This document shows positions 48,184 to 56,460 of a stretch of DNA of 64,000 nucleotides, piece by piece. Source of the DNA: Ramazzottius varieornatus. Lineage: Eukaryota; Animalia; Tardigrada. The stretch spans positions 1,338,725 to 1,402,724 of the forward strand of contig BDGG01000003.1 in NCBI GenBank assembly GCA_001949185.1, in the 5' to 3' direction. The notes beneath the pieces were generated by a model, which was not told the DNA's origin, did not search any database, and worked only from the letters and a program-made list of their open reading frames with translations. Both the position numbers and the translations under genes were made by a program. Numbering within the stretch: position 1 is the first letter of the stretch; each line of letters opens with the position of its first letter.

Positions 48184-50360
48184 ATGTGTCAGGTCGACGA
48201 GGATGGTGTGGATCTTCTGGCTGCCGGAGATGGATCAGAAAAATCTTTGGCTGATCGTGTTTGTGTGAAATGTGGAGAGCAAGCTGTGATACACCTACGG
48301 GACGAGGACGTCAAGTGTGGGAAATGCCTCGTGGCTTCCGTCAACCAGAAATTCCGCGCTGTCCTGACCAAATTCCAACTGTCCCGCAGTAAACAAACAA
48401 TCTTGGTGGCGTTTTCTGGTGGACAAGTGTCTTGTGCCCTCCTGGAAGCCGTGCGCGAGGTACGAAGCAATCTCTTTCGCAGCCCAAACTTTTGCATTGA
48501 GAAAAAGCTTACCATAAAAAATTTTCCTGAATCTGCACCGTCTCTGCAGGCTACAACCATACCCAATTTCAGCAGACTCTACTCCGTTCTCTACATCGAA
48601 GGTACATGTACTTTTCATTGAGTTTTCCAGTCAGTGTTTCTGTGCTAATCTGTCGTTGTGGTTTTCAGAAGGCATTTGCGATGGACTGACCGAAGAAGCT
48701 TGTCAAAAGAAAATTCGTAACATCGTGGGAAAATGTCGCTATATTTTTCCCGAGGTCCCTGTACTGGTATCATCTCTGGAAATGGTGAGTACCTTTGGTC
48801 GGAAACGCTCAGTAGTACCGCAGCAAACTTGAATATTTGGGACAGGGGGAAAATGAGTGGAACCCAATTGTATCTCAAGCGACGCACATCTCATTACAAT
48901 TCGCCAGAATTGTGCGCCACTTAGTAAACAATCTGGCTCAAATCGTTGTCTAAGTCCCTTTCATGCTTCAGTAAGTCGATGTTTGTTCATTTTAGGTGTT
49001 CGCTGAGGATTCAATACCATTGTCGTACATCTTTCCTGCGAATTCAACAGACACGGCTCCGCTGACCGGTTTAACGGAGTTCGGAGCGAGGTTCAAGAAG
49101 CTTCTGGCCTCCACCAAGTCTCCCACCGCAAGAGAAGAACTTCGAAAGCTTCTCCGGAATAACCTATTTCGAAGAATAGGCCATCAGCAAGGTCTCAAGA
49201 CGCTCTTCGTGGGTGACTGTGCGGATCGTCTGGCCGTCCAGCTCATCACTGACACGGCGCTGGGCAGAGGAAAGCACCTTCCTCTGGAGCTGGGCTACGC
49301 TGACACCCGAGACCCTGACTTCACGATCGTCAGACCTTTCAAGGACGTCACCATGAAAGAAATATTGATGTACAACTCTCTCCGTCTGAACGAGAACATA
49401 GGTAAGCTTCCACTGAGACATTATTCTTTTCGAAGAAATTGCACGTCGAAAACAGAATTTGGCAAGGTTGCAAGCGTGCGCCACATGGAAACTCGACGCG
49501 TTCGTTGTCTCGGGTGGTGCTCGTTTTGATTGTATTTGGCTGCGAGCGTGCGCCACTGGAAGGAACGATGTTGATCGTTTTGTTTGACGGCGTCCTAAGT
49601 TGCTTTTTCGGAGGTTCGCATGCTGAAGAACCCAGTTCAGCAAAGAAAATGAACTCGGTGTATTCTTTCACCGAGACCTTCATCAACAGTCTGCAGAAGG
49701 ACTTCACGCAGACGGTGACGACGTTGTGTAGGACTGGTGACAAACTGTGCGCCACTTCGACAGGGCAGCCTCCCGCGAAGCATTCGATAGAGAAGTCTTC
49801 CGGCAAACTATGCTCTTTCTGTTGTGTAAGAAGAAAGGATGTTTTCTCTCTTTTGTTTCTGGTTTTGGTCAGTCATCGGTCGGGCTAGTTTACGTCGTAT
49901 CGTGATTTTAGGGACCGATGGATACTTCGGAGGAAGATGCCTGCACAGCCGAGAACTCCATCGCCTTGTCGCTTCGTCTTTCCGCTGCTTTGCCGAACAA
50001 GACGGTGAAGGCTTCAGTCGATCTTGAAGACTTCGCCTCTTCGAAGCACAGCGAGTGTGGGTCGGCGAACGGTGACTGTGCTAAGGCGAACGGCGAAGGA
50101 TGCTGTACTAGCAAAGAGCGGAAGACGCCGGAAAAGCTACTGTGTTACTCTTGCCGGTGGATGCTTAGCGAAGTGGTAGGTCCACCCAATCCTTTCTTCC
50201 TTTGTTCATCGTAACTGTCCTGGTAACGAGCACTTCTATTGTTGCGCAGGGTGATCAGGGTCTTCTACCTGAACGTTTGATGCAAGTAAATTCACAGCAG
50301 GTTCGTCGAGCTGAGATGCGCACCAGCATCCAGAACTTCCTTCTTGACGACGATGTCTAA
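48184..50360 (+). CDS. CTU2: Cytoplasmic tRNA 2-thiolation protein 2 (Ncs2), multi-exon
   Basis: MCQVDED start; CxxC...CxxC N-terminus; ILVAFSGGQVSCALL; GDCADRLAVQLITDTALGRG; VRPFKDVTMKEI; TLCRTGDKL; LCYSCR; C-terminus EMRTSIQNFLLDDDV*. Confidence 0.94.
48877..48922. repeat. GTGGCGCAC palindrome family core (46 bp), CTU2 intron
   Basis: AAGCGACGCAC...GTGCGCCACTT followed by AAACAATCTGG. Confidence 0.8.
49512..49558. repeat. GTGGCGCAC palindrome family core (47 bp), CTU2 intron; second degenerate copy just upstream
   Basis: GGGTGGTGCTC...GTGCGCCACTG; also GTGCGCCACAT at ~49476. Confidence 0.75.
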
Positions 50361-50639
50361 TGATGACTGTAATTCTGAGATACATGAAAATGCCTGTTTC
50401 TGGAGTTTCCACAATTTTTACGTGTTGGGAGGAGTAGAAAATGTGAGAAGTAGGGAGTATTTAAACCGACGAGACAATAAAAGAGACCAGCAAGAAAAGA
50501 CAGGTTTTGAAGTGAGCTTGCATTGACTGTCCGTAAGTTAATTGGGAATGACAGATGTTTTCAAAGGAGCACTTGAAAGAAACGAGATTACGGCTTTTAA
50601 CTTTTCTTCCTTTTTCTGGATTCTGCTATCCATCACGAG

Positions 50640-53600
50640 TCAAGAAGGCCTTCGAGTAGTGCTGGATTGATGGTGGCGTCCAGAGACCTTACTGCGCGAC
50701 TTGAGAGCAGAGACGGTACTTGCCGTTGATGCACCACTTGCGACTCCTTCCTCTTCCGAAGCGGTCTTGGCAATGGCCAGTAGGATCATTGTCAGTTCCT
50801 TTTGATTAATCTTCCCGTCGCGGTTGATATCGCAGCCACTGATAATGGCATCGTGGAAGGCCTCCAAATACAATAGGTTTGGTGATGGTTGGATAAATGG
50901 TTAAACGGTTGAACAGGCGGTTGGACAATCATTATTCGGAGAGACCATGGACGGATAAAAGGTTTATCCGGTTGACAAGCGGCTGGTTAAAAATGTGTCA
51001 TCCTGATACCTTGCCTAATTTGAAATATTGGGGCTATCGCAAATTCGGTAGTTTGTCAGCTACTGTACATACATAAACGACTCAGTGCTCAGCTAATTTG
51101 GGATTCTGAAAGAGGCATAGCTGGCAGGTAACGTCTGCGTTAAGATAAACAACGATCCACAGAGAAAACTGGCTGAAAATTGGGCGTTTAGGACGTTTTC
51201 CCGAATGTTTCATGTTACCGGACTTATCCGGATAAAAACGTGGTTGGATGGAACCTGTATCCGGTTAATGGCGATTGATTACGGCTTCTATCCGGATAAA
51301 AACGGTTCATTAAAATCCCTATCCAGCCCCACTTTTAATCGGATATATCCGGTTATATCCAGCGTTGGTTGGATAATTAATATCCCTACCTCCAAATCGT
51401 CCATGTCGTAATCCGACTTGGCTAGTTCCAGAAGATCTTTGCACAGACCGTACAGCTCTTCATTCTCAATCGTCCCGTTCCCATCCTGAAAACAGCCACA
51501 AGATCAGGCCGCTTCTTCAGTCTCTCTGATATTTCTTCGGGAAAACGGTCGCGTGTATTTTTCGCTATGAAGCAGGCGTCAAAGTTGAACACATACATAT
51601 ATTTTTGGCGAAATATAATGAAATGGGAGGCCGACAATCGAAACAAACGAGTCCTTATTTCAAGTGTTGCATGGTTCCAGCCAATGAGAGTCGAAACGTA
51701 CGTACTCCACTTAAAGGCAATGATCGTATTGATCAGCAAGTCTCGCACGGTTCCAGCCGACAACCGTAAGAACGTGGGTACGCCACTTGAAATGAAAAAC
51801 GTTTAGAGTACATCTGCCTGGCCTAATCACCGGCCTGGACAAAATTTCCGGCCACCGGCCCAAAGCAGCATAGCTTCGATTGATTGATCAGTCTTGCTGG
51901 CGGCTGCCGCTTTCGGCCAGTGGCCAGAAATTTTGTCCAGGCCGGTAATTAGGTCCGGCGCGTGTACGTTTTGTTTGCCTTCGTGCCTGGTGGGGGTATT
52001 CCAGACTTATATTGTTACACATATCTCCGATATTGTGTGGAAGTTCCGAAACTTACCCTGTCGTATAGAAGGAAAACATTCTCGACATCTTGAGCAGTCA
52101 AAGTCCGTAACGAGCCCTGAAAACCACAACGTGTATTAATTCGCCCGAGGAAGTCACGCAGGGATAATTTCGAGAGAACGGGAAGGGGGGGAATATACTT
52201 TCTGGTTTTGCCCTCCTCTAGCCTTGAAGACAGCGCGGTTCAGGAAGTTCTCTTTGACCGGTAACAATCTGGAAATAAAAATAACAGAGTTACTCTATTG
52301 ACTCTTCCAATCATAACTTCCACATGTTTATTTTGGTTGAAAATAACAATGTGAATTCTGTTTGCTGGAAAAGTCAGATTCTTATCCTTACTGAGCCATT
52401 TCACTCAGCTGTAGTTTGCCATCTTTATTAGTATCGAATATTCTCAACTGCAAAGAGAAAAGCCCAAGCTGATTAGGAAACTTTAATGGACATGAAGAGC
52501 TAGCCTCTTTAGCCTCCGGCGGAGATTGCCTTCTCCCCAGAGACTACTCCAACCAGGAAGTGCGGACTTCCCATTCTTACAATTGAATCAGTGTAATCAA
52601 GGAGCTTGTCATCATCCAAGATTGCTGCGCTGTTTGATCGCAGTATAACTGCCAGCAGAAAATCCTGAAACAACAGGAAGGGAATTTCGTGTACCAAAGC
52701 GTTCCCAGCGTTCAAAAGTGGGACAACAAAGCGTTGATCAACGATCATTGATTTTGGAAATTTCCAAAGGTCAGAACAAGGTGAGTCCGACATTACGTAT
52801 GAGGTAAAAGTAGCGGACTTGTCCATGTAAAATCGCATGGGGTACCTGTCCACCCTAGATCTGCTCTTCGGCTGATCAGGTCTTGTTACTTTTTGGTTTA
52901 TTCGATAAGAAAAGCCCCTATCTATTTTTCGAACATGGTAGACACGAAAGAACAGCGGATTTGTTGAGAGACATCCGCTAAGGAGAGAGACGGTCGACGC
53001 AATGTTAAAAAGCCTGTTTTTGAAAAATCAGCTGATTCTAATCAATCAAGTTACGATTCATGTACATGTGCCAACTTTTCAGGGTGGACAACTTCACCAT
53101 GCAATTTTACGTGGACAAGTCCGCTAGTTTTACCTCGTACCTTAAGTTCATCCGCTTCGATGTATCCGCTGTAGTCTTTGTCAAACTGCTTCCATATCTT
53201 CAAAAGTACAAAGTACATATTCGGAACTTATAAATAAACTTTTTCCAAAACAACTCAGAAATCTTTGGATGGGAAAATTCGGGGCGTTGAAAACGGTTGT
53301 AGAGCAGTTATTTTCTTAGTGCGCACTCACCCGCATGAACTCCACACTTGATTCAAGCGGGTTGTTGAAGCGGAAAAGGAGGAAGAAATTTTCATCTAGC
53401 GGAAGTAATTGCGCCAGCTGCAATTGCAAGTAATAAGCGTCCAATCTGCGTCTGAACAGCTCGTAGACCTCGTATCGACCCACAAACCCAGACGGGTATG
53501 CCAGGCCTTCTTTCCGTTACAGAAGCTCCTTTACGTCAAGTTCGAAGAAATCTTCCTCATTGCAAGCAGACGCATTGTGTTAAGGCGGCGGGAGCCGGTG

Positions 53601-54365
53601 AAACAAATATACTGTACGTGGACTGGTACTTGCTAAACTTGCTCACAAGCTTCACCTCTTTGATTTCAATCTTGCCGTCATGGTTCACGTCATACTCTTC
53701 CATAAAACTCCGTTTTAGTTCTTCAAGTGTCTTTTTCGGAATACTCTGAAAAATAAACATAAGACTGATCTTCAGCGCTTTGCGTAAGATGCGAATGCTT
53801 CATGATTTTTGGTTGAGACGTTTCAGTGAAGGTATGTACGGTTTAGGCAGCACGCAAGCTCTGATTCCATAGAGTACTTCACATCACAACATCAAGAGCA
53901 AACTACTGCGGGGTACGGATTGCAAAGAGTACACGGAAAGCGTAAGTTTTTCTTGTAAAAGAAGCGTGCCTCATTTTGTCGATTCCTATTACCATAAATT
54001 ACCTTCACTACCCACAATTTCGGGACACTTACTTCTGGACTAGGCAGGTTACACACTGCCACCAGGAACTCCTGCAGGAATCCGTCGAGTTCGGCGCCCT
54101 CGATAAATCCATTCCCTGGAAAGAAAAGATATGGTTGGATATAAATGTGTGAATAAAGGCTGGAGTGAAGCTCCCAAAAAGAATGCCGACAGTAAGTTCT
54201 GACAAAATATTGAGGTTAGTTATGCGGATTACCGTCGGAGTCGTAATGCGTCCAGACATCCATGAATTGTGCCGCAGTGAGGCGTTGAATGCGTGGAGAT
54301 CCCGGCTCGTTTAGGAGATACTGGTTCATATATCCCACAACCTTGTTTCCTGCTGTTGACGACAT
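50640..54365 (-). CDS. Cbp53E: Hexa-EF-hand calbindin/calretinin family protein (calbindin-32/Cbp53E-like), about 11 exons
   Basis: MSSTAGNK...LTAAQFMDVWTHYDSDGNGFIEGAELDGFLQEF; YDVNHDGKIEIKE; LPLDENFFLLFRFNNPLESSVEFMR; FDKDYSGYIEADELK; FDTNKDGKLQLSEMA; DGNGTIENEEL; CDINRDGKINQKELTMIL. Confidence 0.92.
50874..51388. mobile_element. hAT-like MITE forming essentially the whole last calbindin intron (50862-51389)
   Basis: TAGG...CCCTA termini, GGATA/TATCC/CCGGTT subterminal repeats at both ends, flanked by direct repeat CCTCCAAA(T) at 50861 and 51389. Confidence 0.75.
51662..51788. repeat. Tandem pair of GTGGCGCAC palindrome cores (51 bp each), calbindin intron
   Basis: 51662-51712 and 51738-51788, both AAGT..GCA.GGTTCCAGCC...GTAC.CCACTT. 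Confidence 0.7.
51822..51953. mobile_element. Palindromic MITE in a calbindin intron
   Basis: Arms CCTAATYACCGGCCTGGACAAAATTTCYGGCCACYGGCC are inverted; central GATTGATTGATC. Confidence 0.85.
52800..53137. mobile_element. mariner-type MITE inserted in a calbindin splice donor
   Basis: ~60-bp TIRs YGAGGTAAAASTAGCGGACTTGTCCAYGTAAAATYGCATGG; TA at 52798-99 and 53138-39; the exon boundary is at 53141/53140. Confidence 0.88.
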
Positions 54366-56460
54366 CCTGGCGAGACTCTCAGCTTGATATACAAACGAAG
54401 ACCCTTTTACACTGATTAGTTCCTACTTAACCGTTCACGCAAATATCGTCGTCGGCATACGACTTGAGTATGCACCCACCAACTGTCATCGTATTCAAGC
54501 ACGAATAAGACAATAACATATCCTCATGAGGCCATACGTCAAACTCAACACAGAACATCCCGCTTCAACGATCGCGAAGAGACGAAGGGGTATTTTTTGT
54601 TATTCGTCCAAATGTCGTAAACACCGTACATTATTTCAGTCGGATTAATCAGCCAAAGATCGTTCTACCACGATGTTGCTGCATCAACATCGGTGAATGT
54701 TCGATACAAAAAGTTTGCAAAATATTTTGGCAGGTAGCGATGCGCTGGATCAATATTCAATAAGCTAACCGTTCGATTCAGAACACAACCTGCGTACGAA
54801 GGATTACCGGCCGGATTAAGTATTCATGATGTTGCCATCACGCGCGGATGAAAGCAGACGCGTCAAAGTGAAGCTGCGATCAACGAGTGAGCAGCTGGAA
54901 TATGTCGAAACAAGCACGGTACTACCAACAAGAAATAAGGCAACAACAGGAAGTAGGATACACAGGGAAATTACAGACTACTGGCCAGCTTGCAAGATTT
55001 CGGGTTTGTGGGTTTACCAGTGGGGAACCCGTATTACACGTATTCACTGATATACAGTATTAGTACGATACCGCGTTCGTACATTTGGGTACTTGCACTT
55101 GTACTAATTTCACGGCCGTTGGTTGTGTGTGTCTTCCTTTTCTTGTGAGGTTTTGAACAAAGCCCGCCATACAGGCGGAAACTTAAGCTATTTTCAGTTG
55201 AGGAGAGTGCGTTGTTCAAGGACCTATGGACTGGAGCACCACAGCTGCTGGGTGACGAAGACCAGGATCGTTACGCTCACCCCTCTCAGCTATTCAATGA
55301 GACTGGGCGTAAACCTTGAAGGCCCATAGATTGAATTCCGATTGTACGGCATTTAAACGGTCGGTACTCTGTCCTGGTAAAGACCTGCCACGCAATTGAT
55401 TTATCCTTCGGTATTTCTATCCCGAAAGCCAGAGCCAACATTATCGGGCAGACGCTAAAGTGAGGAGTGCGGGTGCGGGACAGTGTGGTAGCCAGACAAA
55501 CAGGATATCGGTATTTTTGAGGTACTTTAACGTGCATAGATTATTGATTATGCTTTCAGTACTGCGCCAGCTCGGGAGAGAATCTTCGATCTCAATGTTA
55601 GCCACATGCAAGGTAAGGTTGTTACAGCAGGAGGCCGGTAATTCCCTTGAACTAAACATAGAATGCTCAGTCATTAAACTGAATCAGGTGGAACTAGTCA
55701 TGTCGACACGCCATTGCAAACCTGGCTTCTGACCCAGCTCATGCGAAGAAAGACAGTATCCCGTTGGGCTTAGATTTTTAAGTTCTCACTATGGCGAAGT
55801 AGGATCGAGCTAGTAAACAAAGGAATATACTTAGTAGTTGCGGACGTCCCGTGTCCGACCCGCGGACGATTTTTCCAGACATCCGAATGTCCAGAAGTCT
55901 CTTCCGATCGCGCAGGCGCACCGAAAGGTTCCAGGTCCTTCGTGCCGCAAGGATCGGAACGAATCCTATGCTTTTCTTTCGAGAATTAACGTAAAAGACT
56001 CAATTATGAACCGTGCTTCAGGTTTGACAGCGCTGGAGTGAAGTTCAGTCGGAAACTGAGCGTGGAAGGACCTTTCGAAAACCGTCAACCTCATCATGAA
56101 GTAGCACGAAGCGCCCTCTTCAGGGAGGTCCTCATTCACAGTGAGTCAGTAAGCTAGTGACGTTTCCTCTGTAGGGGATGACGTACACAGTGAGACGTGT
56201 TTACAGATTAAAATAAACCCTCTACATCTCAGTTCTCACCTTCGTGTTTCCAGTTGCGCTTCTTCCCCAAAGTGGACGATGTTTGGCCTTTTGTGCTTAA
56301 TCTTCGGGAGAGAACGTAACTAACGAATGGATATAAGCGACAGTCGATTCAGGAGCAGGTCGCGCAGACTTTATTCTTGATCTTTAGGGTGAATTGGACA
56401 GAACATCTGCCTGATTCTAGACATCCATCTTATTCTGCCTTGTGACTTGTCTGTCGAGAA

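Follow-up and report, generated by a model that had tools for sequence, protein, structure and literature searches.

We analyzed a 64,000-nt stretch of the genome of the tardigrade Ramazzottius varieornatus (contig BDGG01000003.1, positions 1,338,725 to 1,402,724; hereafter the window), in which a calbindin-like gene on the minus strand carries a 528-nt intron close to its 3' end. Our main finding is that this intron very probably began as a non-autonomous hAT transposon of 515 bp, which landed in the last exon of the gene while that exon was still undivided and turned into a spliceosomal intron. An earlier note on this DNA, made from the letters alone, had proposed a transposon-generated intron of this kind, and the proposal is supported by the family to which the element belongs, by the joint seen in RNA and by the absence of the intron from relatives and paralogues. 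The anatomy of the sequence, the membership in a repeat family, the removal from RNA and the absence in relatives are each shown by the analysis. The features concerned are given below in window coordinates, with the basis of each in parentheses.

50640-54365, minus strand: calbindin/secretagogin-like hexa-EF-hand gene (RNA-contig joints, GT..AG registers and frame checked, matches to PDB sequences).
51390-51485, minus strand: exon E10, 32 codons, DGNGTIENEELYGLCKDLLELAKSDYDMDDLE, putatively the upstream half of a once-single last exon (RNA-contig joints, frame).
51389-51396, minus strand: upstream copy of the target-site duplication (TSD) of 8 bp, TTTGGAGG, whose last G is intron base 1, the G of the donor GT (alignment with family copies).
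50862-51389, minus strand: gained intron, 528 nt, phase 0, with donor GAG|GTAGGG and acceptor TTTGGAG|G (joint in runs X4 and X13, unique GT..AG register).
50874-51388, minus strand: non-autonomous hAT element, a miniature inverted-repeat transposable element (MITE) of 515 nt, with its 5' terminal inverted repeat (TIR) at 51388-51376, its 3' TIR at 50886-50874 and subterminal GGATA/TATCC(GG) motifs (homology ends, motif counts).
50869-50873, minus strand: spacer of 5 nt, TTGTA, which separates the end of the element from the TSD copy and lies outside the element (other copies adjoin their TSD directly).
50861-50868, minus strand: downstream TSD copy, TTTGGAGG, whose bases 6-7 (AG, 50863-50862) form the acceptor, exon 11 beginning with its last G (50861) (family alignment, register).
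50640-50861, minus strand: exon E11, 73 codons and stop, AFHDAIISGCDINRDGKINQKELTMILL..., putatively the downstream half of the former last exon, with EF-hand 6 inside (RNA-contig joints, frame).

Read on the minus strand, the junctions are GAT TTG GAG|GTAGGGATATT and CCTATTGTATTTGGAG|GCC TTC CAC, or, printed at greater length, GAT TTG GAG|GTAGGGATATTAATTATCC... and ...CACCAAACCTATTGTATTTGGAG|GCC TTC CAC. The 9-mer ATTTGGAGG lies at both of them, at 51397-51389 and at 50869-50861, 528 nt apart, just as the earlier note had described. Only one of the ten possible registers of this repeat, the one after eight bases, yields GT..AG, which places the intron at 51389-50862 in phase 0. In this register the donor GT is made of the last TSD base and the first base of the element, and the GAG acceptor lies inside the second TSD copy; both had been read correctly from the sequence, as had the long AG-free tract (more than 110 nt by the earlier reading), the nearest AG on the 5' side of the acceptor being 121 nt away. 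The 528 nt are thus composed of one G, the 515-nt element, the 5-nt TTGTA and 7 nt of the second TSD copy. The reading frame that preceded the insertion is restored exactly, and the uninterrupted spliced reading ...DYDMDDLE-AFHDAIISGCDINRDGK given in the earlier note is correct.

Some details of the element needed revision. The earlier note had treated the whole 9-nt repeat as duplicated: the same sequence does lie at both junctions, but the true TSD is 8 bp, and the ninth repeated base (A) is either a chance match or part of the TTGTA spacer. A 9-bp TSD was rejected; the hAT family of the element makes 8-bp TSDs. The window copy has the perfect 8-mer TTTGGAGG on both sides, at its 3' end 5 nt removed from the element. 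The offset of 4-5 nt reported earlier is therefore real and corresponds to the spacer, which is missing from all other family copies. The alternative of counting TTGTA as element sequence was rejected as well; the homology in all other copies stops at CCTA, query position 515. The window copy begins TAGGGATATTAAT... and finishes ...AAACCTA. The ends TAGG...CCCTA claimed for it hold for the 5' end and for the family copies, but its own 3' end is CCTA, not CCCTA, and its TIRs (TAGGGATATTAAT and TAGGTTTGGTGAT) are decayed relative to the family TIR. The GGATA/TATCC repeats noticed earlier occur 14 times in the 528 nt, where about 0.9 would be expected from the window density, and are concentrated in the initial 165 nt and the final 110 nt. 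There is a second terminal motif, TAGGGATTTTAAT, with one mismatch to the TIR, at 51309-51321 on the minus strand, 67 nt inside the 5' end of the element; it may be a duplicated terminus. The 515 nt contain only short open reading frames (ORFs) of at most 68 aa, none of them with family matches. A strong RNA hairpin formed by the TIRs and joining the splice sites was not supported (fold z-score -1.2, TIRs decayed).

The splice signals set this intron apart from its neighbors. At the nine other introns of the gene, a U-rich tract precedes a YAG acceptor, and the donors resemble GTAAG or GTGAG. By contrast, the gained intron has the donor GTAGGG, a GAG acceptor and a poor tract, which is what would be expected of a young intron.

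The element belongs to a repeat family. With 50870-51388 as the query, the assembly that contains the window (55.84 Mb in 200 contigs) gave 24 further matches at 70-83% identity, most of them over the two ends (query 1-165/193 and ~380/420-515). In these ~24 other loci, homology runs no farther than query positions 1 and 515. A 22-nt terminal pattern was found at 33 genomic sites, and the reversed pattern, used as a control, at 0. The TIR of the family is 13 nt long, TAGGGATGTTAAT, and other copies end exactly TAGGGATGTTAAT... and ...CCCTA. A census of complete copies over loci L002-L055, allowing at most one mismatch in the TSD, gave 14 other elements with 8-bp TSDs directly at their TIRs. 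Eleven of these TSDs are perfect (GCTGTATA, TCTGTGTG, GTTCCTAG, TGTGTGAG, GCCCTGCG and GTGTGGAC are examples) and three have one mismatch. The sizes of the 14 complete elements are 567-1011 bp, plus three of 2.65-3.46 kb.

Relatives of autonomous size are present in the same genome. The element at L041:3581-6745 (3165 bp, perfect TSD TTGGGAAC) has both subterminal regions in common with the window copy and encodes the domain PF05699 Dimer_Tnp_hAT (E=1.5e-20); the element at L042:98-3557 shares its termini with the window copy and encodes the same domain (E=8e-18). The hAT catalytic domain was not detected in single ORFs of the long copies, so the transposase is split or decayed there. Two of the long members carry foreign material. 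L042:98-3557 (G000 C4, ~871.4-874.9 kb) holds a nested Tc1/mariner-like ORF pair, HTH_33 and DDE_3, beside the hAT dimerisation domain, and L043:3583-6234 (C5, ~2714.6-2717.2 kb) holds reverse-transcriptase (RVT_1) fragments, a nested foreign insertion. The hAT-type identity given in the earlier note is thus upheld by a repetitive family with 8-bp TSDs and an autonomous-size relative with a hAT transposase domain. Judged from its members, this is a small, old hAT family with non-autonomous derivatives.

A dedicated introner family, creating introns genome-wide by preference, would be another way to account for the element. With any TSD that ends in G, and in both orientations, its hAT terminus TAGGG (TAAGG in some copies) offers a donor. 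Nevertheless, the family is small, with about 33 terminal matches. Among the 14 other complete copies, no TSD ends in AGG or starts with CCT. Nor does a convincing coding frame run across any of them (the best ORFs that do so have 43-126 aa of sequence that is not protein-like). In an introner family in the sense of Gozashti et al. 2022, with many similar copies, several members would be introns in genes; judged by TSD and coding frame, this was not seen in the 14 other complete copies. A precise intron from this hAT family needs a TSD of the form NNNNNAGG in sense orientation, and 0 of the 14 other TSDs have it. The genome search suggested in the earlier note therefore returned further copies with 8-bp TSDs, but none that coincides with an intron by these two measures, and the suggestion that the intron is "possibly one of a family" of introns was not supported. 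We consider a dedicated introner family very unlikely. The calbindin intron is a one-off capture filtered by selection, not the product of a specialised introner family.

Evidence for removal of the element came from RNA contigs of four runs (X1, X4, X9 and X13), from four studies under the same organism label, which were compared over 50200-54800. Two contigs, X4 record 14 (1576 nt) and X13 record 10 (1316 nt), contain the joint 50860/51389, which skips 528 nt and is ambiguous over 9 nt. Both contigs also carry neighboring joints, i.e. they are multiply spliced. The predicted 51390/50861 junction is thus seen in RNA contigs from two studies, which skip exactly 528 nt. Run X4 has 0 differences from the assembly and contains the joined form only, with no contig over the element interior. 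The unspliced form occurs as well: X9 record 19 covers 50249-51484 without a break, with the 528 nt retained and intron 9 spliced, so intron-retaining RNA exists. The retained transcript is predicted to reach a stop after 33 extra codons and to lose EF-hand 6.

Runs X9 and X13 come from a strain that is 2.5-3.5% diverged and has the element and the spacer. Compared with the assembly, they show ~1% differences in exons, 3.4% and two small indels in the gained intron, and 3.1% in intron 9, and no difference from the reference at 50861-50890. From these differences it follows that the diverged strain carries the element together with the spacer, and that the interior of the element drifts like any other intron.

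Related genes lack the intron at this position. When E10 and E11 were each compared with the same genome in six frames, each gave one 100% locus, the filled one. At five paralogous loci (on C13, on C1, two on C8 and on C19), the equivalents of E10 and E11 are contiguous in one open frame, with equal length and spacing. In the paralogue at L029:1273-1593 (G000 C1:2025542-2025862, plus strand), the open frame continues across the place of intron 9 as well (...LFVQYDRDGDGEI...), and the last two introns are both missing. ORFs of relatives were collected by a database search with E11 alone and a cluster look-up; one of them, P0006, came from a search with P0003. All six (P0001-P0006, on contigs of other organisms, 54-99% identity) are uninterrupted at the site, with no residue gained or lost. 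The reading across the site is ...DYDMDDLE(A/T)FH(D/A)AII..., and in P0006 it is DLQEFEETIL. The intron was expected to be absent from related genes, and six relatives' ORFs and five paralogues are indeed continuous, at the protein level in the case of the relatives.

Two of these ORFs can be recognized as genomic. P0002 (39.7-kb contig) starts MEWK|DGNG and P0005 (9-kb contig) reads ...YGILQ|DGNG, whereas exon 9 of the window gene ends ...FLLYDR. Because these starts differ from the end of exon 9, the ORFs run out of an upstream intron, and hence the contigs are genomic, with intron 9 kept and intron 10 absent. The distinctive C-terminal tail of the window protein recurs in P0003, which is therefore a close orthologue; the short ORF of P0003, starting at an internal Met, suggests that it may be genomic too. 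In the more distant relative P0006 (Logan contig, 2325 bp), sequence that looks non-coding and ends ...ITYQ is followed by the homologous ORF, which starts just ahead of DYDAQDLQEF.... The species concerned may carry an intron ~8 codons upstream of where the MITE intron lies but none exactly there. When JGI metagenome contigs were scanned with the orthologue alignment, no relative turned up. Overall, the intron is a lineage-specific gain, which predates the split of the two strains and postdates the split from the relatives that supplied the ORFs.

Several points weigh against this reading. The support from RNA consists of assembled contigs, without read counts or strand, and the RNA status of the runs is presumed. 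The empty site in the relatives is seen at the protein level only, and P0001, P0003, P0004 and P0006 would be genomic on the strength of ORF length and start alone. The comparison consists of five paralogues and six relatives' ORFs. The second TSD copy does not adjoin the element, five bases of unexplained origin lying between the two. Lastly, the spliced mRNA is by construction identical to the transcript of an insertion-free allele.

This last point opens the way to a different account of the RNA, namely that the joined contigs come from an insertion-free allele in a presence/absence polymorphism and not from splicing, and that the filled allele is a disrupted gene whose transcripts are the "retained" form. 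A precise splice product and an empty-site transcript could not be told apart by their sequence; moreover, both forms were seen in X13, and the X9 contigs show the retained form only. However, the assembly has a single E10/E11 locus, the filled one, and X4 matches the assembly with 0 differences yet shows only the joined form. The joined contig of X13 and the retaining contig of X9 carry the same strain-specific differences in exon 11 and the 3' flank (50503-50709). In addition, this account would require both strains to be heterozygous for an old insertion with decayed TIRs, with backgrounds that match in other respects. We therefore regard an insertion-free allele as a highly improbable source of the joined RNA.

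One could also imagine that a MITE inserted into an older intron already present at this codon boundary, in which case the likeness of the junctions would be coincidental. Intron 9 of the same gene also holds an inverted-repeat element. On the other hand, the part of the intron outside the element amounts to 13 nt, of which 8 are TSD, leaving 5 nt for any pre-existing intron. The TSD itself consists of exon sequence, the chance of the 8-mer flank recurring within ~13 offsets of the other end is ~2e-4, and none of the five paralogues and six relatives' ORFs has an intron at the site. This makes an older host intron extremely improbable, and we return to direct insertion into the exon.

For the insertion into the exon we propose the following course, in which the order of events, the mobilisation in trans and the origin of the 5-nt spacer after insertion are inferred. 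Transposase supplied in trans from the roughly 3-kb relatives would have mobilised the element. It would have integrated at the 8-bp target TTTGGAGG, within the codons GAT TTG GAG GCC, and the target would have been duplicated. As the target ends AG|G and the element starts with T (TAGGGAT...), the upstream junction reads GAG|GTAGGG, a usable 5' splice site. The downstream duplicate provides ...TTTGGAG|G, with its AG in the same register, as the acceptor. The branch site and the pyrimidine tract must be drawn from the 3' subterminal region of the element and the TTGTA spacer; we speculate that the spacer was favored for adding U's beside the acceptor. The spliceosome removes G + 515 + 5 (TTGTA, probably a later indel) + 7 nt = 528 and restores ...GAT TTG GAG GCC... 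exactly. The signals are weak (GAG acceptor, poor U-tract, 121 nt free of AG), and intron-retaining transcripts occur.

The rest of the gene is organized as follows. The coding sequence runs from the ATG at 54365 to the stop at 50640 and has 11 exons and 1038 nt = 346 codons. All ten joints are present in RNA contigs, and all are GT..AG on the minus strand. The exons upstream of E10, defined by the RNA-contig joints, are:

54365-54233, minus strand: exon E1.
54115-54033, minus strand: exon E2.
53745-53656, minus strand: exon E3.
53417-53331, minus strand: exon E4.
53197-53141, minus strand: exon E5.
52664-52581, minus strand: exon E6.
52447-52392, minus strand: exon E7.
52268-52199, minus strand: exon E8.
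52116-52057, minus strand: exon E9.

For the PDB searches, the exons of the window gene were queried singly. E1 gave a weak match to calbindin residues 12-28 (E=0.013), while P0003, which represents E10-E11 in the orthologue, matched secretagogin 217-270 (E=1e-9) and calbindin (E=3.5e-4). By these sequence matches, the window protein is a member of the calbindin/calretinin/secretagogin hexa-EF-hand group. Vertebrate calbindin-family genes also have 11 exons. The literature searched contained nothing usable on intron positions in calbindin-family genes.

Intron 9 (571 nt) contains a pair of inverted repeats at 51808-51870 and 51905-51967, each of 63 nt, 84% complementary and 34 nt apart, which is probably a palindromic MITE. 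Beyond the 3' end of the gene, contigs from all four runs leave at 50249 and resume at ~50153-50174, skipping 74 nt (50175-50248) with GT..AG on the plus strand. Apparently a convergent plus-strand neighbor gives a transcript that overlaps or abuts the calbindin-like gene at its 3' end, and the two are merged in the contigs. In run X1 only, there is a joint within 52837-53112 that skips 274 nt with a non-canonical TG..CG on the plus strand (depth 5.6, side 27). This joint may have arisen in assembly as an artefact; X1 also covers many introns.

The birth of new spliceosomal introns in animals is poorly documented, and a clean case born from a transposon has rarely been recorded in them. Here one event is fully legible: the target duplication made of exon sequence, the ends of the element, its family, an autonomous-size relative, transcripts from which it is removed, and paralogues and relatives in which it was never present. 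Its host is a conserved and expressed animal gene, and the case shows that an ordinary MITE, with no specialised introner involved, can end up as a fixed intron after landing in an AG|G site. A picture of a young intron emerges as well: its acceptor is weak, the stretch without AG is long and retention is partial. We can go further only tentatively. It is possible, though in our judgment doubtful, that the tardigrade genome gains introns repeatedly by the "accidental" intronisation of ordinary DNA transposons of several superfamilies. Tardigrada would then be a further, limno-terrestrial animal group with transposon-driven intron gain, and the hAT termini (TAGGG/TAAGG) would be pre-adapted donors if the 8-bp target ends in AGG.

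Co-option of splice sites from the TSD is an established mechanism of introners (PMC11282704; bioRxiv 10.1101/2022.06.06.494994), and in a large survey transposon-type introners were found in only two animal groups (bioRxiv 10.1101/2022.06.06.494994). In the literature searched, there was no paper linking introners or transposon-derived intron gain to tardigrades. Like the introners of algae and protists (Micromonas, Aureococcus, Symbiodinium; PMC11282704), the calbindin element is a short non-autonomous DNA transposon with TIRs and a TSD that lies in coding sequence. As in introners, too, the splice sites are part element and part TSD, and splicing restores the original mRNA; in the calbindin intron the donor is split between the TSD (G) and the element (T), and the acceptor lies wholly in the TSD. 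Introners, however, exist as hundreds to thousands of near-identical copies that are introns, whereas here a single copy of an old, ordinary hAT MITE family of ~33 members is concerned. The host also departs from the pattern of the introner survey with its two animal groups, being a limno-terrestrial animal.

The other known system is maize Ds. Judging from the titles cited in PMC3260210, hAT elements acting as introns are represented by maize Ds alleles, and the ends of Ac/Ds are C/TAGGGATGAAA (PMC3260210). When C/TAGGGATGAAA of Ac/Ds is compared with TAGGGATGTTAAT of the window family, the first eight bases are common. The calbindin element resembles maize Ds/Ds1 in its hAT superfamily, in its 8-bp TSDs and in being an exon-borne element that behaves as an intron. 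Dennis et al. in 1988 and Wessler in 1991 reportedly described Adh1 and waxy alleles of maize in which Ds/Ds1 (hAT) elements are spliced from exons. These cases are said to be recent mutant alleles, with several splice sites in or near Ds and a message that is usually altered. Unlike these maize cases, the calbindin insertion is present in two diverged strains, its frame is restored exactly and the gene is otherwise intact.

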